From the sequence record NC_048821.1: a stretch of 64,000 nt of DNA. One strand, given 5' to 3'. The notes beneath the pieces are model-generated. The model was not told the origin of the DNA and did not search any database. It saw only the letters and a list, made by a program, of their open reading frames with translations. Positions 48,000-53,369 of this stretch are shown here, piece by piece. The stretch's first letter is position 1. Each line of letters begins with the position of its first letter. Both the position numbers and the translations under genes were made by a program.

Positions 48000-48020
48000 A
48001 GGAGCTTCGGCTCCTCTTTT
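48000..48020 (+). terminator. UUCG hairpin terminator
   Basis: AGGAGC-TTCG-GCTCCT followed by CTTTTATTT. Confidence 0.65.
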
Positions 48021-48056
48021 ATTTGCTTATTGAATATTTAACCGAGAGTTATAACC

Positions 48057-48527
48057 ATGACTAAAGAAGTAAGAAAGGAAAAAGGTTACGTTAGTGTTGA
48101 TTTAGCTTACCACCAATGTGGGGTTATCCGTGACATGTTGGTCAGTCAGAACATCACACCTATTGACCAAGGGAAGTTTCATTGTACTATCGCATTTGAT
48201 AAGGATTTGATTGACAATGCCTTAGAGCCTAAACTTGATCCAAGTAAAGTTTTTGAAGCGAAAGTGATTGGTGTGGAACTTATGGGGAAAGTGAAGGAAG
48301 GTTTGCAAAGTGCGGTAGCACTTACCTTAGAATCCAGCGATTTGACCGAAGAGCATTATAACTGGATGTCTCTGGGTTATGAGCACAACTGGCCCGACTA
48401 CATCCCGCACATGAGTGTGGCTTACGATGTCCCGGTAGAAGAAGCAGAGCGTTTAGTGGATATCCTGCAACCTTTTGTGGGTCAAACTTTCTACTTTAAC
48501 AATCTAACCGAAGAACCAATCAAGTAA
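48057..48527 (+). CDS. acb1: 2H phosphoesterase, Acb1 (T4 gp57B)-like anti-CBASS nuclease
   Basis: GYVSV, KFHCTIAFD, HNWPDYIPHMSVAYDV and terminal EEPIK parallel T4 Acb1 GLYVA, KIHSTICYS, HDFDDYTPHITLSYNV and KEPLK (recalled sequence). Confidence 0.75.
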   Translation: MTKEVRKEKGYVSVDLAYHQCGVIRDMLVSQNITPIDQGKFHCTIAFDKDLIDNALEPKLDPSKVFEAKVIGVELMGKVKEGLQSAVALTLESSDLTEEHYNWMSLGYEHNWPDYIPHMSVAYDVPVEEAERLVDILQPFVGQTFYFNNLTEEPIK

Positions 48528-48548
48528 AAGTGGGAACAGAACAAAATC

Positions 48549-49196
48549 ATGAGTAAGAAAAACAAAGGCACACGCAGAGGTGTCCAAATTAAAGGTCGCC
48601 AGCAACGTCTGACCAAGCTAAACCAATACACTATCGCTAATACGGTAAAAGAGATCAGCGATCATTTCTATTTCTTTGGTAGTCATGCTCATCAGCTCAG
48701 TACTATGGACTGGGCTCCTAAGCTATTGAAGTTAAAACAATCCAAAGATCGTCAAGTTGCAATAAAGGCGCTGATCACGTTGTTGAGTGAACCTTCTCCT
48801 TGGCAACTGTTTTTATTCGTCGGTGTGGATACCGGAGAAACTGTAGAAGTATTTTCTTACTTACAAGAATTCAAGAATGAGACACATGTTAAAATAGCTA
48901 CTCCTTGTGGTGAATTCATTACCGAGTGTTTAAATGGAGTTAAGCGCAATATTCTTAACGAAAAAGAATACAAAGGTACACAGTTAAAGTCAACTCACAA
49001 GGTATGCGGGTTTGGGTATTATCTGTTTAACTCCGATGAATATAACCTCGACGCAGCGGAAGACTCCATAGCAGACTCGCTGTACGAGACAGGTGTCTTC
49101 GATCATCCGTTTGATGAGAACGATTACGTCACCATCAAACCATCTCATTTCACTGAGCTGTTCACAAGACAAGAACTCAAAACTATTAAGGGTTAA
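48549..49196 (+). CDS. hypothetical protein with basic N-terminus
   Basis: 215 aa, MSKKNKGTRRGVQIKGRQQR. Confidence 0.65.
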   Translation: MSKKNKGTRRGVQIKGRQQRLTKLNQYTIANTVKEISDHFYFFGSHAHQLSTMDWAPKLLKLKQSKDRQVAIKALITLLSEPSPWQLFLFVGVDTGETVEVFSYLQEFKNETHVKIATPCGEFITECLNGVKRNILNEKEYKGTQLKSTHKVCGFGYYLFNSDEYNLDAAEDSIADSLYETGVFDHPFDENDYVTIKPSHFTELFTRQELKTIKG

Positions 49197-49198
49197 TT

Positions 49199-50356
49199 AT
49201 GAAACATTTTATCGACGCACTAGAACAAGTGGTAATTGCAGGCAATGAAAGCAATGGAGATCATTATGCGTTGCATTGGCATCATAAGTTCGATATTAAC
49301 AAAGAAGGTTACTTACCACAGTGGTCAGCAATCGCCAAGACTCCTGGGGTGGACGTTGCCATTAAAGAACTGGAGTGGGTGTTGAGTCAAGATAGCTCAT
49401 TGGACATTTTACATGACGCTGGCTTGAACCACCGTGATTACATGGCTGTGGAAGAAGATGTCATGTATCTCCGTAATTATACTTTCGATGAGCGTGTGGA
49501 AAAAGCCAAACAACGTTTCTTTGAAGCTGGTGTGATTTTGGAGGACACCGATGCACTCAAGTCAGCTTTCCTAGATAACGGTATGATGGATAAACATCTT
49601 ACTTTGGGTGGATGTATGGCTGCGATGGGACTACCTGAAGCAGCAGAAGAAGTGGTGGTCAAGAAAGGTGAGATCGGATTAAGTCAAGGTAAGGCATTCC
49701 AGACACCAACCAGTACCGGTGTAATTTTGTTCCACGCACCTGAGTTACTTCCAGAACCAACACACTCCATAGCAGAGGCCGCTGGAGAAGGTCGCTACAT
49801 TAATACACCTAAACAAATCCAGATGAGCTTCTTGCAAAATGAAATCCCGGTAGATCGTCGCATTGAGATCATGCATTCTCGCGGGGAGAATCAAGCAACA
49901 AAACTCATCACTGGTATCGTTAATGACCTGCCTTACAAAGATTTGGTGGAGTTGGGTCTGGATATGAGCGAAGAAGATTACGACTTGGTAGACCGTGGTA
50001 ATGTCATCACCGACATGTTAACCACGATACACGTTCCGCGCTTTGAACTCCATACCCGTTTGATGTTATCAACACTATCTCCCCTAAAAGAGTATTCAAC
50101 CGAAGTACTGCCTTACATGCTTTATGCGGAACAGGTAGCACTTAAAACTAACATGATCAACACGTCCTTTACGTTGGATGTCGATTACTTGTTGTTGGAT
50201 AAAGAAACTCTGGGTATGCTGATTAAAATCAAAGAGTCCGAGTTAGACTACACTAAAGTAGGTAAAGTGCAACTACAGCGTCCCGGCAACCTAAGTATTG
50301 TCGACGTCCCTTTGACTAAAGAAGAAGTCAAGACCTTCGATTACATCGGTCTCTAA
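49199..50356 (+). CDS. thymidylate-synthase-fold protein, apparently catalytically dead
   Basis: collinear with ThyA (MKHFIDALEQVVIAG, KELEWVLSQDS, GEIGLSQGKAFQ, LHTRLML, YMLYAEQVA) but with no DRTG, RR, PCH, RSxD, N177 or HxY motif. Confidence 0.7.
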   Translation: MKHFIDALEQVVIAGNESNGDHYALHWHHKFDINKEGYLPQWSAIAKTPGVDVAIKELEWVLSQDSSLDILHDAGLNHRDYMAVEEDVMYLRNYTFDERVEKAKQRFFEAGVILEDTDALKSAFLDNGMMDKHLTLGGCMAAMGLPEAAEEVVVKKGEIGLSQGKAFQTPTSTGVILFHAPELLPEPTHSIAEAAGEGRYINTPKQIQMSFLQNEIPVDRRIEIMHSRGENQATKLITGIVNDLPYKDLVELGLDMSEEDYDLVDRGNVITDMLTTIHVPRFELHTRLMLSTLSPLKEYSTEVLPYMLYAEQVALKTNMINTSFTLDVDYLLLDKETLGMLIKIKESELDYTKVGKVQLQRPGNLSIVDVPLTKEEVKTFDYIGL

Positions 50357-50360
50357 AAGA

Positions 50361-50387
50361 ATACAACTCTATATTACTTGAGTGTAC
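50361..50387 (+). promoter_or_regulatory. early promoter candidate
   Basis: ATACAACTCTATATTACTTGAGTGTAC containing exact TATATTAC; upstream of the chaperonin. Confidence 0.6.
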
Positions 50388-50427
50388 TAACCACCTATTA
50401 ATAAAACCTTTCATGAGGAATTAAAAC

Positions 50428-51987
50428 ATGTTATACCAAGCTTCTGAAACTACCACTATCAAAGATGAAGTTGTTAGAAAAGTTACCGGAACCGTTATCT
50501 CCACGATGGGTCCCGATGGTAAATTTGTGTTATGTGACAAAAGCGGTATCCCACATCCCACTAAAGATGGTGTGACCGCAGCGAAAGCCATGCGCTTCGA
50601 TGAACCACCAAAGGACTTGATCGCGTCGATGATCGCCGAGTGCTGTCTGCGCACCGACAAGATTTGTGGTGACGGAACCACCACTACTGCTTTCTTATTG
50701 CGTGAGATTTACAATCGCTTCAAGTTTAAATGTGATTTCCGTAATAAGAAGTTGATCAATAAGTACTCTCAAGAAATCGTAGGCATTTTAAAACAATTGT
50801 CTGTCCAAGTTAACATCGATTCAGATTTACTGCGTCAAGTTATGATGACTACCAGTAATAACGACGAACGTATCGTTGACAAAGTTCTAGAGATCTACGC
50901 CGAGCATCCACACTTGCCGGATTTAGATTTACGTGAAGCAAATGACGACAAGGACCAAATTCAATCCAACACGGGTTGTAGTTGGCCGGGTGGTTTTGGG
51001 TCTCCTGAGTTCTCTAACCTAGGTACTGGTGCGCCAGAACACTTTGACCAAAAAGACCAATATCGACCAATCTTACTTTCAGGTGAATTGAACGGGTTGG
51101 CTGATAAAGCAAGTTTGGATAAGTTTATTGGTTACACCAAAGAGTATGTTGCAGCTGGCGGTACGTACTTAATCTTTTGTCGTAGCACCGAGGGTGTGAG
51201 CGAAAATGCCATTAAAGCGATGAACTCACATGTAGGTCGTATCGCGTACAAAGTGGTGACTATCCGTGCAGCTGGTTCTTCTGGTGTTTCACTAATGAAT
51301 GACATTGCAACAGTCATGGGTGCTAAGATGTACACTGAGTTGGTAGCTGACCATCCTGAGTACCGTGTGGCTAAAGAGTACCCTATTGTCCATATCTCCA
51401 GTGCGGCGGTTACGATTGTAGGGTTTTCTGAAGAACATGACAAACAACTGGATGCGGCGATCAAAGAGGTGAACCGTACCTTAGCTGATCTAAACGTGGA
51501 TCAACGTCATTCAGCATTAGGTCGCATCGTTGAATCTCGCTTGCGTATTTTATCTGGCGGTTCCGTAACACTTTATGTGGGTGGTTTGACTGAGTCTGAC
51601 ATTCGTGAACGTAAAGACCGTTTTGAAGACGTTGGTCGCGTTTGTAAATCTGCGCTCCGTAATGGTGTATTGCAAGGTTGTGGTTACTCATTGGTAATGG
51701 CATCTAAAATCTTAGAAGCTAAATACCCTAAGTGTGACATCGCTCAAGACTTTGTTTCTATTCTGAAGCAGCAAACACAATATCTGATGAAAACAGATTA
51801 CGTGGATGGTATGACTTTCGTTAACCTAGCAACAGGGGAAGAAGGTAAAGAGCCAGGTGAGATCGGTATCTGGGATGCGGCGTTAGCGACGATCACTGCA
51901 TTAGAAGCAGCGGTTTCTATGGCTATTATGTTGATCGACACTGACTCTATGATTCTTAACTCACGCCTTAGTGAACTTCGTTTCTAA
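50428..51987 (+). CDS. groEL: GroEL-like chaperonin (EL gp146-type)
   Basis: STMGPDG, TKDGVTAAK, GDGTTTT, YVGGLTESDIRERKDRFED, GVLQGCG. Confidence 0.92.
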   Translation: MLYQASETTTIKDEVVRKVTGTVISTMGPDGKFVLCDKSGIPHPTKDGVTAAKAMRFDEPPKDLIASMIAECCLRTDKICGDGTTTTAFLLREIYNRFKFKCDFRNKKLINKYSQEIVGILKQLSVQVNIDSDLLRQVMMTTSNNDERIVDKVLEIYAEHPHLPDLDLREANDDKDQIQSNTGCSWPGGFGSPEFSNLGTGAPEHFDQKDQYRPILLSGELNGLADKASLDKFIGYTKEYVAAGGTYLIFCRSTEGVSENAIKAMNSHVGRIAYKVVTIRAAGSSGVSLMNDIATVMGAKMYTELVADHPEYRVAKEYPIVHISSAAVTIVGFSEEHDKQLDAAIKEVNRTLADLNVDQRHSALGRIVESRLRILSGGSVTLYVGGLTESDIRERKDRFEDVGRVCKSALRNGVLQGCGYSLVMASKILEAKYPKCDIAQDFVSILKQQTQYLMKTDYVDGMTFVNLATGEEGKEPGEIGIWDAALATITALEAAVSMAIMLIDTDSMILNSRLSELRF

Positions 51988-51996
51988 ATAAAAAGA

Positions 51997-52024
51997 TATG
52001 TGGACTCCTACGGGGGTCCACATA
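51997..52024 (+). terminator. hairpin terminator after the chaperonin
   Basis: TATGTGGACTCC-TACG-GGGGTCCACATA. Confidence 0.7.
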
Positions 52025-52054: not shown

Positions 52055-52429
52055 ATGTTAAAGAAACTTTACTTATGGTTACGTGAAAAGGTGGCGGGTG
52101 AGGAACTAAGAGAATTAGCTGAGTTGAAGAAAAGACTTGGTGAGGCACGTTCCTATATGCGGGAAGACCCAAGAGTGGTCGACACGGTTGATTGGATAAG
52201 TGGTAAGAACAAATCCGACATCCGAGGCTTCCGTGACCACTATCGTTTTAAATACACCGCCATAGCTCGTTCGTTACCTAATTTAAAATACTCCCGGGAA
52301 GAACTGATCAAGTCTCAACCCAAGTATTACCGAACACGCGATACCTCTGAATTAACTTCCGGGTCACCTAGCCTGACTATCAACGATGAACTCGGTTCAT
52401 CCAATGTCGTCCCGTTCCCAAGGGATTGA
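52055..52429 (+). CDS. hypothetical protein (paralog of 52458..52937)
   Basis: shared N-terminal ~65-aa domain. Confidence 0.65.
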   Translation: MLKKLYLWLREKVAGEELRELAELKKRLGEARSYMREDPRVVDTVDWISGKNKSDIRGFRDHYRFKYTAIARSLPNLKYSREELIKSQPKYYRTRDTSELTSGSPSLTINDELGSSNVVPFPRD

Positions 52430-52457: not shown

Positions 52458-52937
52458 ATGAACTGGTTTAAACGTTTTATTAAACTTAAAGTAGCGAAAA
52501 AAGAAATCCAACGTTTATGGGTTTTGGAACAACGTATCCGAGATATGGAAGCTTGGCTATCTACGGAACCTAAGTTAGTGCGTGCCGCTGAGTGGTTAAA
52601 GGAAAAAGATAACCCGAAATCGATCTCAGACTTCCGAACTCAGTTTGAAGCAGAGTTTGGTAGCAATCGCACGGTACAACATAGACAACAAGCAAACTCC
52701 CCTAAGCGTAGTACGCCAAGCCAAACGCTAAGAAACAACCCATCCCGTACAAGACACGACCAAGACCACCTCGGAACCGTAGTAACTCAGCACCAACATC
52801 ATCACTACCACGATGAGAGTACTTGCCACTCCAATACTCGAAGTGAGTGTGATCGTTCACCTGAACCAACTCCTGTTCGTGATGAACCATCTGGGTCTTG
52901 TAACAACCAATCAAGTATGGACACGTCTTATGATTAA
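52458..52937 (+). CDS. hypothetical protein with disordered His/Ser-rich tail
   Basis: AAGGAAT RBS; N-terminus parallels 52055..52429. Confidence 0.65.
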   Translation: MNWFKRFIKLKVAKKEIQRLWVLEQRIRDMEAWLSTEPKLVRAAEWLKEKDNPKSISDFRTQFEAEFGSNRTVQHRQQANSPKRSTPSQTLRNNPSRTRHDQDHLGTVVTQHQHHHYHDESTCHSNTRSECDRSPEPTPVRDEPSGSCNNQSSMDTSYD

Positions 52938-53232: not shown

Positions 53233-53369
53233 ACAAAACAACTTATTGGGCCCTGAATTGTATCGGGGCCTTCGTCTTTGTTGGAGTGGTGGTGATGGGT
53301 CTCATCATCGCTCCTTTCTTTTTTATTTATCGACAACTAACTAAAACGAAAAAGGCAACACATGTCTAA
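53229..53369 (+). CDS. single-TM small protein
   Basis: TTG overlapping the upstream TGA; CIGAFVFVGVVVMGLIIAPFFFIY then basic tail. Confidence 0.35.
   Translation: MNKTTYWALNCIGAFVFVGVVVMGLIIAPFFFIYRQLTKTKKATHV

Follow-up and report, generated by a model that had tools for sequence, protein, structure and literature searches.

A thymidylate synthase-fold protein without the catalytic residues of thymidylate synthase, encoded in a constant pair with gp104 in Gorgonvirinae jumbo phages

To our knowledge, the superfamily of thymidylate synthase (TS) consists almost wholly of enzymes that work with a Cys nucleophile and an arginine clamp, namely TS itself, dCMP hydroxymethylase and dUMP hydroxymethylase. 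TS is an obligate dimer, and its active sites take two arginines from the other chain. The dCMP and dUMP hydroxymethylases, of the T4 gp42 and SPO1 gp29 type, are superfamily members repurposed by phages, and they retain both the Cys nucleophile and the phosphate-binding arginines. Elsewhere, dead paralogs called "prozymes", such as the trypanosomatid AdoMetDC prozyme and a deoxyhypusine synthase paralog, are reported to activate the live paralog by hetero-oligomerisation (PMC6221367, PMC3663545). In the literature we found no description of a conserved, selected and catalytically dead member of the TS superfamily, nor of the protein family treated here. Its representative is gp105, encoded at 49199..50356 on the + strand of a 64,000-nucleotide stretch of sequence record NC_048821.1 (hereafter the window), a TS-fold protein of 385 amino acids (aa) without the TS catalytic residues. 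The records carry it as a "hypothetical protein" (YP_009853457) and PHROG 26020 gives it no function; the gp105 family is here newly recognised as a pseudoenzyme or re-tooled member of the TS superfamily. That it is a catalytically dead derivative of a long TS, kept by selection, we regard as very likely; the best overall explanation, to which we give a probability of about 0.6, is that a displaced long TS has been reused as a non-catalytic binding module working with the product of the upstream gene, gp104.

Over bases 48000-52000 the window has 100% identity to Photobacterium phage PDCC-1, a member of Gorgonvirinae (Aphroditevirus) with a record of 237.5 kb (NC_048821), and position 1 of the window corresponds to about 62001 of that record. 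The annotation of the record includes a nuclear shell protein and split multisubunit RNA polymerases, and PDCC-1 is a nucleus-forming jumbo phage of Gorgonvirinae; for phiKT1019 and phiKT1028, both of which carry gp105, formation of the phage nucleus was demonstrated experimentally (PMC10587174). The reading frame of gp105 starts at an ATG and runs without a stop through 385 aa, intact as the first-pass annotation of the window had described it when it proposed, from the letters and their open reading frames, a TS pseudoenzyme at this place.

Searches that compare sequences barely see TS in gp105. The protein had no match in Pfam, NCBIfam, PADLOC or PDB sequence searches, including the curated-threshold hidden Markov models for ThyA (Pfam PF00303 and the NCBIfam TS models), and BLASTP against E. 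coli ThyA aligned residues 1-85 alone, with 24% identity and a pairwise E of 0.006. A profile of 12 family members paired residues 1-83 with the N-terminus of PDB TS chains, mostly their residues 1-84, at E of 0.3-1.8; PF00303 was reached by one of the 12 relatives (E 3.3e-4). Taken by themselves, these searches are weak evidence for TS, and the predicted structure was what decided. The AlphaFold2 (AF2) model of gp105, built on the 12-sequence alignment, has a pLDDT of 89.4 and a pTM of 0.81, and Foldseek found for it 381 matches in PDB at E<=1e-3; 49 of the best 50 listed are TS, with probability 1.00, and the remaining one is 4f2v, a serine hydrolase designed de novo. Normalisation to E. coli TS gives TM-scores of 0.65-0.68. 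Because of the model and these matches we take gp105 to have the alpha/beta fold of TS, in agreement with the first-pass annotation. The canonical ThyA proteins, such as E. coli ThyA and the second TS of PDCC-1, gp168, have the same fold and can be aligned over the N-terminal 85 residues, whereas gp105 differs from them by having no Pfam or NCBIfam match, by two large inserts and by the loss of the catalytic set.

The two inserts lead to a particular group of TSs, the long proteins of jumbo phages (phiKZ gp235, 201phi2-1, PhiPA3, Phabio and others), which have the fold and both insert sites in common with gp105. A TS of 488 aa, phiKZ gp235 shares 52-53% identity with E. coli ThyA in its catalytic blocks, and large inserts divide the match to the TS model into three stretches. 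The BFVD search pointed the same way: the named matches outside the family that stood ahead of ordinary TSs were long jumbo-phage TSs, from 201phi2-1 (457 aa, E 8e-12) and Aeromonas phage D3 (460 aa), and gp42-type proteins matched the gp105 model weakly (E about 1e-2). When the family was compared by hhalign with a profile made from an alignment of 18 long jumbo-phage TSs, the match had a probability of 97.7% and an E of 2.5e-12 and ran end to end over 359 collinear columns, in contrast to a probability of 1.8% and an E of 0.027, over residues 1-83 only, against compact TSs. The sub-alignment of residues 1-83 also matched the long TSs (probability 95.8, E 7e-9). Insert 2 taken alone matched insert 2 of the long TSs over 66 columns (probability 89.4%, E 2e-6), and insert 1 alone was weakly similar to its counterpart (E 0.0027). 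Moreover, R221 in insert 2 of gp105 corresponds to R314 of gp235, an arginine invariant in the gp105 family and in the active long TSs, where it belongs to an E-L-T-x-x-E-R motif. Insert placement agrees as well, the DSSP assignment of the AF2 model giving helical inserts at aa 84-156 and 216-281. Profile comparison thus shows gp105 to be a descendant of a long two-insert TS and not a decayed ordinary ThyA. The full catalytic set is kept in the 18 long TSs and not in the gp105 family, and gp105 is therefore a derivative, not a functional member, of the long-TS subfamily. A forced global or greedy alignment against compact TSs gave unreliable middle sections and was discarded. Outside its own family, the best structural matches of gp105 in BFVD were UPI001EA56C5A (393 aa, E 1e-16) and A0A1C3NFC4 (471 aa, E 4e-13), which could be further long or dead TS-like proteins.

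The residues of gp105 were mapped by profile-profile alignment (hhalign) through phiKZ gp235 and the 18 long TSs, over 12 members of the gp105 family; TS residues are given in E. coli numbering. The N-terminal TS core, aa 1-83 (49199..49447, +), which BLASTP, the profile search and hhalign all recovered, comprises helix A, strand i and helix B with E57. The segment G157-x2-G160-x3-G164-x2-F167 (49667..49699, +) corresponds to G88-G91-Y94-G95-W98 of TS, with the pattern of G91, G95 and W98 retained as G160, G164 and F167; P204-K205-Q206 (49808..49816, +) stands at the nucleophile position P145-C146-H147; and strand v with the start of helix J occupies aa 282-302 (50042..50104, +). On this map the nucleophile C146 is replaced by K205, a Lys in nine of the 12 members and an Asn in three. 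R21 becomes N16, in a variable column, and D110, Q111, R126, R127, W133 and N134 have no counterpart in the family at all, the helix H / strand iii segment being deleted. Further along, Q165 is L290, R166 is S291 (again a variable column), S167 is T292 and D169 is S294; H207 and Y209 have become L331 and L333; N177 is E302, a Glu invariant across the family. Y94 corresponds to Q163 in gp105, a position that is His in 8/12 members and Gln, Ala, Ser or Trp in the Aphroditevirus subclade, PDCC-1 included, and I79-W80-D81 correspond to H78-R79-D80, each conserved in 11/12. None of the folate-contact residues I79, W80, W83, L172, G173 and F176 is retained. The single survivor is E58, kept as E57 in 11/12 members.

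These losses are common to all 12 members, which span 24-89% identity, as the first-pass annotation had supposed for the one protein before it. All mapped TS residues are invariant in the 18 long TSs, which keep R21, E58, W80, Y94, R126, R127, C146, H147, R166, S167, D169, N177, H207 and Y209, whereas gp105 has E58 only, is without the helix H / strand iii segment and carries a new conserved motif in insert 1. In the compact TS alignment, gp168 included, every mapped TS residue is an invariant column except R127 and H147. Of what makes a ThyA, gp105 thus has neither the Cys of P-C-H nor the phosphate clamp R21, R126', R127' and R166 (with S167), and from the base-recognition and proton-relay set E58, Y94, N177, H207, Y209 and D169 it has the first alone. 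It fares no better as a hydroxymethylase. The N177 position is acidic in both cases, Asp in dCMP hydroxymethylase and Glu (E302) in gp105, but the hydroxymethylases have the Cys nucleophile and the phosphate arginines and gp105 has neither. Since nucleophile and phosphate clamp are both missing, the alignments support the view that gp105 would be unable to carry out TS, dCMP-hydroxymethylase or dUMP-hydroxymethylase chemistry, and its earlier exclusion from the base-modifying enzymes holds.

Six blocks had been paired by eye with E. coli ThyA in the first-pass annotation, and five of them agree with the profile map (gp105/ThyA 1-15/1-15, 56-73/57-74, 157-168/88-99, 284-294/159-169 and 300-314/175-189), the last one putting E302 at N177 as had been read. 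The sixth, NQATKLITGIVND at residues 231-243, had been taken for helix H; the map puts it within insert 2, beyond the P-C-H position, and the similarity is fortuitous, the true helix H segment being deleted. The only Cys of gp105 does lie in an insertion, being Cys139 of insert 1, and neither the structural nor the profile alignment places a Cys or the Arg clamp at active-site positions. The description of a "whole active site erased" is right for the catalytic set and goes too far for the rest, with E58 kept as E57 and the pocket conserved with new residues. Two other candidates for the missing nucleophile were rejected. A greedy alignment offered P280-R281 as the equivalent of P-C-H; P280 is not conserved, and the long-TS profile puts P204-K205-Q206 there, followed by the match of I-P-V-D-R-R with L-T-V-D-E-R. 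Cys139 might be taken for a shifted C146, its spacing from N127 mimicking that of N134 and C146, yet the G-x2-G-x3-G-x2-F pattern follows C139 and in TS precedes the Cys.

The loss of catalysis is accompanied by the presence of another TS. PDCC-1 gp168 (record 176449-177357), the paralog that the first-pass annotation had suggested looking for elsewhere in the genome, matches PF00303 with an E of 2.9e-53, has all the catalytic columns, is of the compact 283-aa type (NF002498) and is about 56% identical to ThyA of Vibrio and other gammaproteobacteria; judged by these matches it is apparently an active TS. A compact copy is present in all 15 phage records with gp105, and the full-length copies are 91.7-97.4% identical (92% for gp168 between PDCC-1 and pTD1). 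In the tree the dead family forms one clade (SH-aLRT 100) on a very long stem, and the other phage TS is in a different lineage. The Vibrio chimallivirus BONAISHI, outside the subfamily, uses ThyX (PMC6207643). With long ThyA in Pseudomonas relatives, ThyX in BONAISHI and compact ThyA in Gorgonvirinae, the synthases differ among relatives, and dTMP synthases have therefore often been exchanged in this group.

Some further observations concern the compact gene itself. Among Gorgonvirinae genera its product keeps an identity of 92-97%, as against 25-84% for other proteins, which suggests recent spread among these phages or unusually strong constraint. In phiKT1028 (OP123707, near 146028-146630) compact TS matches occur in two separate places, the first covering residues 1-201 only, and the gene may be interrupted there; an intron, an intein or a homing endonuclease could be the cause. 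Immediately upstream of gp168, gp167 (record 175654-176445), annotated as hypothetical, is an HD-domain phosphohydrolase (PF01966, E 4e-5).

As regards distribution and selection, a HMMER search of 1.84 billion representative proteins returned only nine clusters of the gp105 family. By tblastn the gene was found in 15 phage records, which are without exception from Gorgonvirinae of Vibrio or Photobacterium, and a scan of IMG/VR gave three already known genomes and no others. Every copy in the phage records is full length, without the frameshift decay that would mark a dying gene, and the metagenomic members, eight further clusters at 24-89% identity, are likewise intact. The family has 17 invariant and 21 near-invariant columns. 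Between PDCC-1 and Vibrio phage 2 TSL-2019 the nonsynonymous divergence (dN) of gp105 is 0.062 and the synonymous divergence (dS) 1.74, which makes dN/dS 0.036, an approximate value with dS near saturation; the ratio of about 0.04 shows purifying selection, and the dN of the GroEL gene next door, 0.066, is like that of gp105. Catalytic loss throughout the family, intact frames under purifying selection and a live TS in the same genome together make up the usual picture of a pseudoenzyme.

What selection maintains can be seen in the inserts and in the former pocket. Insert 1, aa 84-156 (49448..49666, +), follows the I-W-x-E-W helix and consists of two strands and four helices in the DSSP assignment of the AF2 model; its site is that of insert 1 in phiKZ gp235 and of the L. 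casei small-domain insert, and in other TSs this site borders the folate cleft. Within it the motif at aa 127-146 (49577..49636, +), the most conserved stretch picked by the locus scan, has the invariant columns N127, G128, M130, L134, T135, L136, C139 and G144 in the conservation table, R99 upstream being likewise invariant, and the active long TSs have no conserved residues at the motif positions. C139 is the only Cys of gp105 and also the only Cys column common to 12/12 members. The 17 positions of the former base/folate pocket have a mean top-residue fraction of 0.659, as against 0.491 for random core positions (permutation p 0.0027), while the phosphate-site positions are variable in the family, at 0.3-0.5. 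New residues at former pocket positions are H78-R79-D80, His163 in most members, K205-Q206 and E302. Because the pocket is conserved, the phosphate site variable and the insert-1 motif gained, the alignment speaks for a phosphate clamp that has decayed and for a pocket and insert 1 that would be constrained for something new. Insert 2, aa 216-281 (49844..50041, +), is helical and lies in the hairpin between two central strands after the P-C-H strand, as placed by DSSP and by the insert-only hhalign comparison; it has survived the loss of catalysis and therefore probably has a role of its own. The family thus raises the question of what the two inserts of the long jumbo-phage TS do, in live and dead proteins alike.

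The constant companion of gp105 is gp104 (48549..49196, +), directly upstream, which encodes 215 aa with a Lys/Arg-rich N-terminus and no recognisable fold. At the junction (49194..49201, +) the TAA of gp104 (49194-49196) is followed after 2 nt by the ATG of gp105 (49199), and a purine run, AAGGG, lies just 5' of it within the 3' end of gp104; the arrangement is likely a site of translational coupling, as had been noticed earlier. The pairing is obligate. gp104 occurs in exactly the same 15 phage records as gp105. Eight metagenomic contigs were looked up as well; in seven it adjoins the TS-like gene, and the other contig starts 47 nt before that gene. gp104-gp105 is thus a Gorgonvirinae-specific gene pair that has had no annotation. 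The AF2 model of gp104 (pLDDT 87) combines a long helix at the N-terminus with a beta sheet and other helices; of the roughly 25 Lys/Arg-rich residues, the first 20 are predicted with low confidence (pLDDT 45-57). The model has no PDB fold match at E<=1e-3 and may represent a new fold. Searches of NCBIfam and PADLOC with gp104 gave no match, and Pfam gave none that exceeds a curated cut-off. A Pfam match to Nmad2 (E 0.12) is weak and was treated as noise, and phiKZ gp233, which lies upstream of gp235, was considered as a homologue and showed no homology.

The pair stands in a conserved block, whose order is RNase H, small ORF(s) (open reading frames), an Acb1-like gene, gp104, gp105, Cpn60/GroEL, small ORFs and thymidine kinase (TK); the same order was found in pTD1, 2 TSL-2019, phiKT1028 and four metagenomic contigs, and two short contigs show one flank. 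The Acb1-like gene, gp103 (48057-48527, +), is annotated "RNA ligase" and matches PF23474, the Acb1 anti-CBASS 2H phosphodiesterase family, with 57 bits (cut-off 27) and an E of 2.2e-15. It had been described as lying beside gp105; it is two genes upstream, not adjacent, and this holds in all longer contexts fetched. Downstream, Cpn60/GroEL (50428-51987, +; PF00118; phrog_5725, E 5e-151) directly follows the pair in every fetched context reaching that far, one short contig being left aside, except one with a DHFR gene between, and on the ground of this order the pair may be functionally linked to the chaperonin. A consensus scan for hairpins, and nothing beyond it, found terminator-like ones at 48000-48015 and 53248-53314 and none on the + strand from the start of the Acb1-like gene to 53025, so that the genes from Acb1-like through GroEL may form one transcript.

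The exceptional DHFR belongs to a distant metagenomic relative. It is genuine (PF00186, E 1.9e-34; 2048-2785 of the fetched stretch), overlaps the stop of the TS-like gene by 11 nt, and has its best phage matches in DHFRs of Erwinia and Pseudomonas jumbo phages. TS-DHFR is a classic gene arrangement, and the overlap in this one lineage, which looks like a relic of a TS-DHFR operon, suggests for that reason that the gp105 locus is the old TS locus. In PDCC-1 no DHFR was found by tblastn over 226 kb of the 237.5 kb, the last 11.5 kb lying outside the search. Gene 127 of Erwinia phage AH06 (2900-4519 of the fetched stretch) was considered as a relative of gp105 and rejected, its N-terminal part being unrelated. 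This protein of 539 aa is annotated as DHFR; the DHFR match covers residues 368-512 only, and the N-terminal part of about 365 residues has no Pfam match.

From these results we propose the following course of events. In the ancestor of Gorgonvirinae a compact Vibrio-type thyA would have taken over dTMP synthesis, and the older long TS would have stayed in the nucleotide-metabolism block near thymidine kinase, where DHFR is still attached to it in one relative. The retained copy would then have been stripped of its Cys nucleophile, of the four arginines of the phosphate clamp (two by the helix H / strand iii deletion) and of N177, Y94, H207 and Y209, keeping the fold, both inserts and E57 and gaining new pocket residues and the invariant Cys-containing motif of insert 1. 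Translated together with gp104, gp105 would act with it as one unit, presumably in physical association, and in this unit the TS fold would be a regulatory or scaffold binding module for a ligand or partner other than dUMP. A displaced dTMP synthase would in this way have been reused, not lost, after its replacement in nucleus-forming phages. The narrower claim that gp105 is the non-catalytic binding partner of gp104 we infer tentatively, at somewhat less than even odds. Several points weigh against the proposal. gp104 has no recognisable fold or family, so the pairing is silent on the job of the unit, and a strongly conserved polar pocket together with an invariant Cys would suit an enzyme of new function no less than a binder. 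The very long stem of the dead clade leaves its attachment point unplaced in the tree, and since the tree cannot place it, the descent from a long TS rests on the shared inserts and the profile scores. With dS near saturation (1.7), dN/dS is approximate only. Finally, gp105 is 31% identical between PDCC-1 and pTD1, as against 57-84% for the Acb1-like protein, GroEL, RNase H and TK, and it is the second fastest-diverging among the eight block genes compared; such fast divergence at depth could mean a host-interacting or arms-race role.

The same conserved pocket is the ground for the main rival, in which gp105 would be a re-tooled enzyme, its pocket rebuilt for another reaction on a substrate without 5'-phosphate or on a base in a polymer, with E57, H78-R79-D80, His163, K205-Q206, E302 and possibly Cys139 as a relocated nucleophile making up the working set and gp104 being a subunit or substrate carrier. 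The positions that once formed the pocket are polar, and their conservation significantly exceeds that of the remaining core; E302 and C139 occur in every member, and 11/12 members have E57, a figure that holds for H78, R79 and D80 too. The insert 1 site borders the folate cleft in other TSs, and DHFR is adjacent in one lineage. We nevertheless consider this unlikely: where TS has its nucleophile the family has either Lys or Asn, His163 gives way to Gln, Ala, Ser or Trp in the subclade of PDCC-1 itself, no folate-contact residue is kept and no known enzyme family matches. It is likewise doubtful that the TS fold was rebuilt, with gp104, into an enzyme of a new kind or into a factor that reads bases or nucleic acids and is peculiar to nucleus-forming vibriophages; if this were true, gp105 would have the first function described for the TS superfamily that is neither TS nor hydroxymethylase. 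The first-pass annotation had offered a dominant-negative partner of host ThyA, a regulatory subunit of a phage TS, an RNA binder and a nucleotide sponge, none of which receives positive support from the present analysis. A rather improbable role is that of a TS-directed subunit, which would form a heterodimer through the TS sheet with gp168 or with host ThyA and serve as a regulator or, being unable to donate R126' and R127' to the active site of its partner, as a dominant-negative poison. It is exactly the R126/R127 segment that gp105 is without, and a TS partner is always in the same genomes, a situation that recalls the prozymes, where a dead paralog is likewise reported to stand beside an active enzyme of the same superfamily and to be kept by selection. 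Here, in contrast to the prozymes, the live TS is of a different lineage and a very different rate and the constant partner is the unrelated gp104, and for these reasons activation of TS by gp105 is not indicated. As for a heterodimer, gp105 comes from the E. coli-type/long lineage while the divergent 283-aa type includes both gp168 and host ThyA, the strand iii region, a part of the sheet, is deleted, and between PDCC-1 and pTD1 gp168 is 92% but gp105 31% identical, a poor fit to a co-evolving interface; the phage needs dTMP, so poisoning of TS seems counter-productive, and the gene fixed as partner is gp104.

An anti-defence role has the attraction of the neighbourhood. gp105 might be a nucleotide sponge, soaking up a signalling nucleotide together with the Acb1-like enzyme, or a decoy mimicking a sensed phage protein; the PF23474 gene is constantly two genes upstream with no terminator-like hairpin between it and gp105, and gp105 diverges fast at depth, as proteins at the host interface often do. 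Still, with the housekeeping genes RNase H, Cpn60 and TK in the same block, proximity carries little weight; the idea of a sponge or dUMP decoy is weakened by the loss of all four phosphate-binding arginines and by the variability of the phosphate site; gp105 has no similarity to known sponges and no functional match in PADLOC, Pfam or PHROG; and with 385 aa it is far larger than the known sponges Tad1, Tad2 and Acb2. We hold this role improbable. Cellular TS is also known to moonlight by binding its own mRNA, and gp105 might have retained RNA binding or translational control alone, helped by the basic tail of gp104. The mRNA binding of TS is established and the N-terminus of gp104 is Lys/Arg-rich, but the Pfam search detected no RNA-binding domain in gp105, and this possibility seems very improbable to us. 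The simplest account, that gp105 is a functionless relic on its way to loss, would agree with a catalysis lost after the second TS arrived and with its place as the second fastest-diverging of the eight block genes; it is excluded for practical purposes by the conservation described above, namely an intact, full-length gene in 15 phage records and eight metagenomic clusters, a dN/dS of about 0.04, and 17 invariant and 21 near-invariant columns with a newly gained motif among them. The reuse of a displaced long TS as a binding module with gp104 accordingly remains the explanation we prefer.

Among the small ORFs between Cpn60/GroEL and TK, gp107 (52055-52429, +) and gp108 (52458-52937, +) have N-terminal halves that are similar by eye, and the two look like tandem paralogs; the C-terminal part of gp108 is His-rich and of low complexity (HQHHHYHD).

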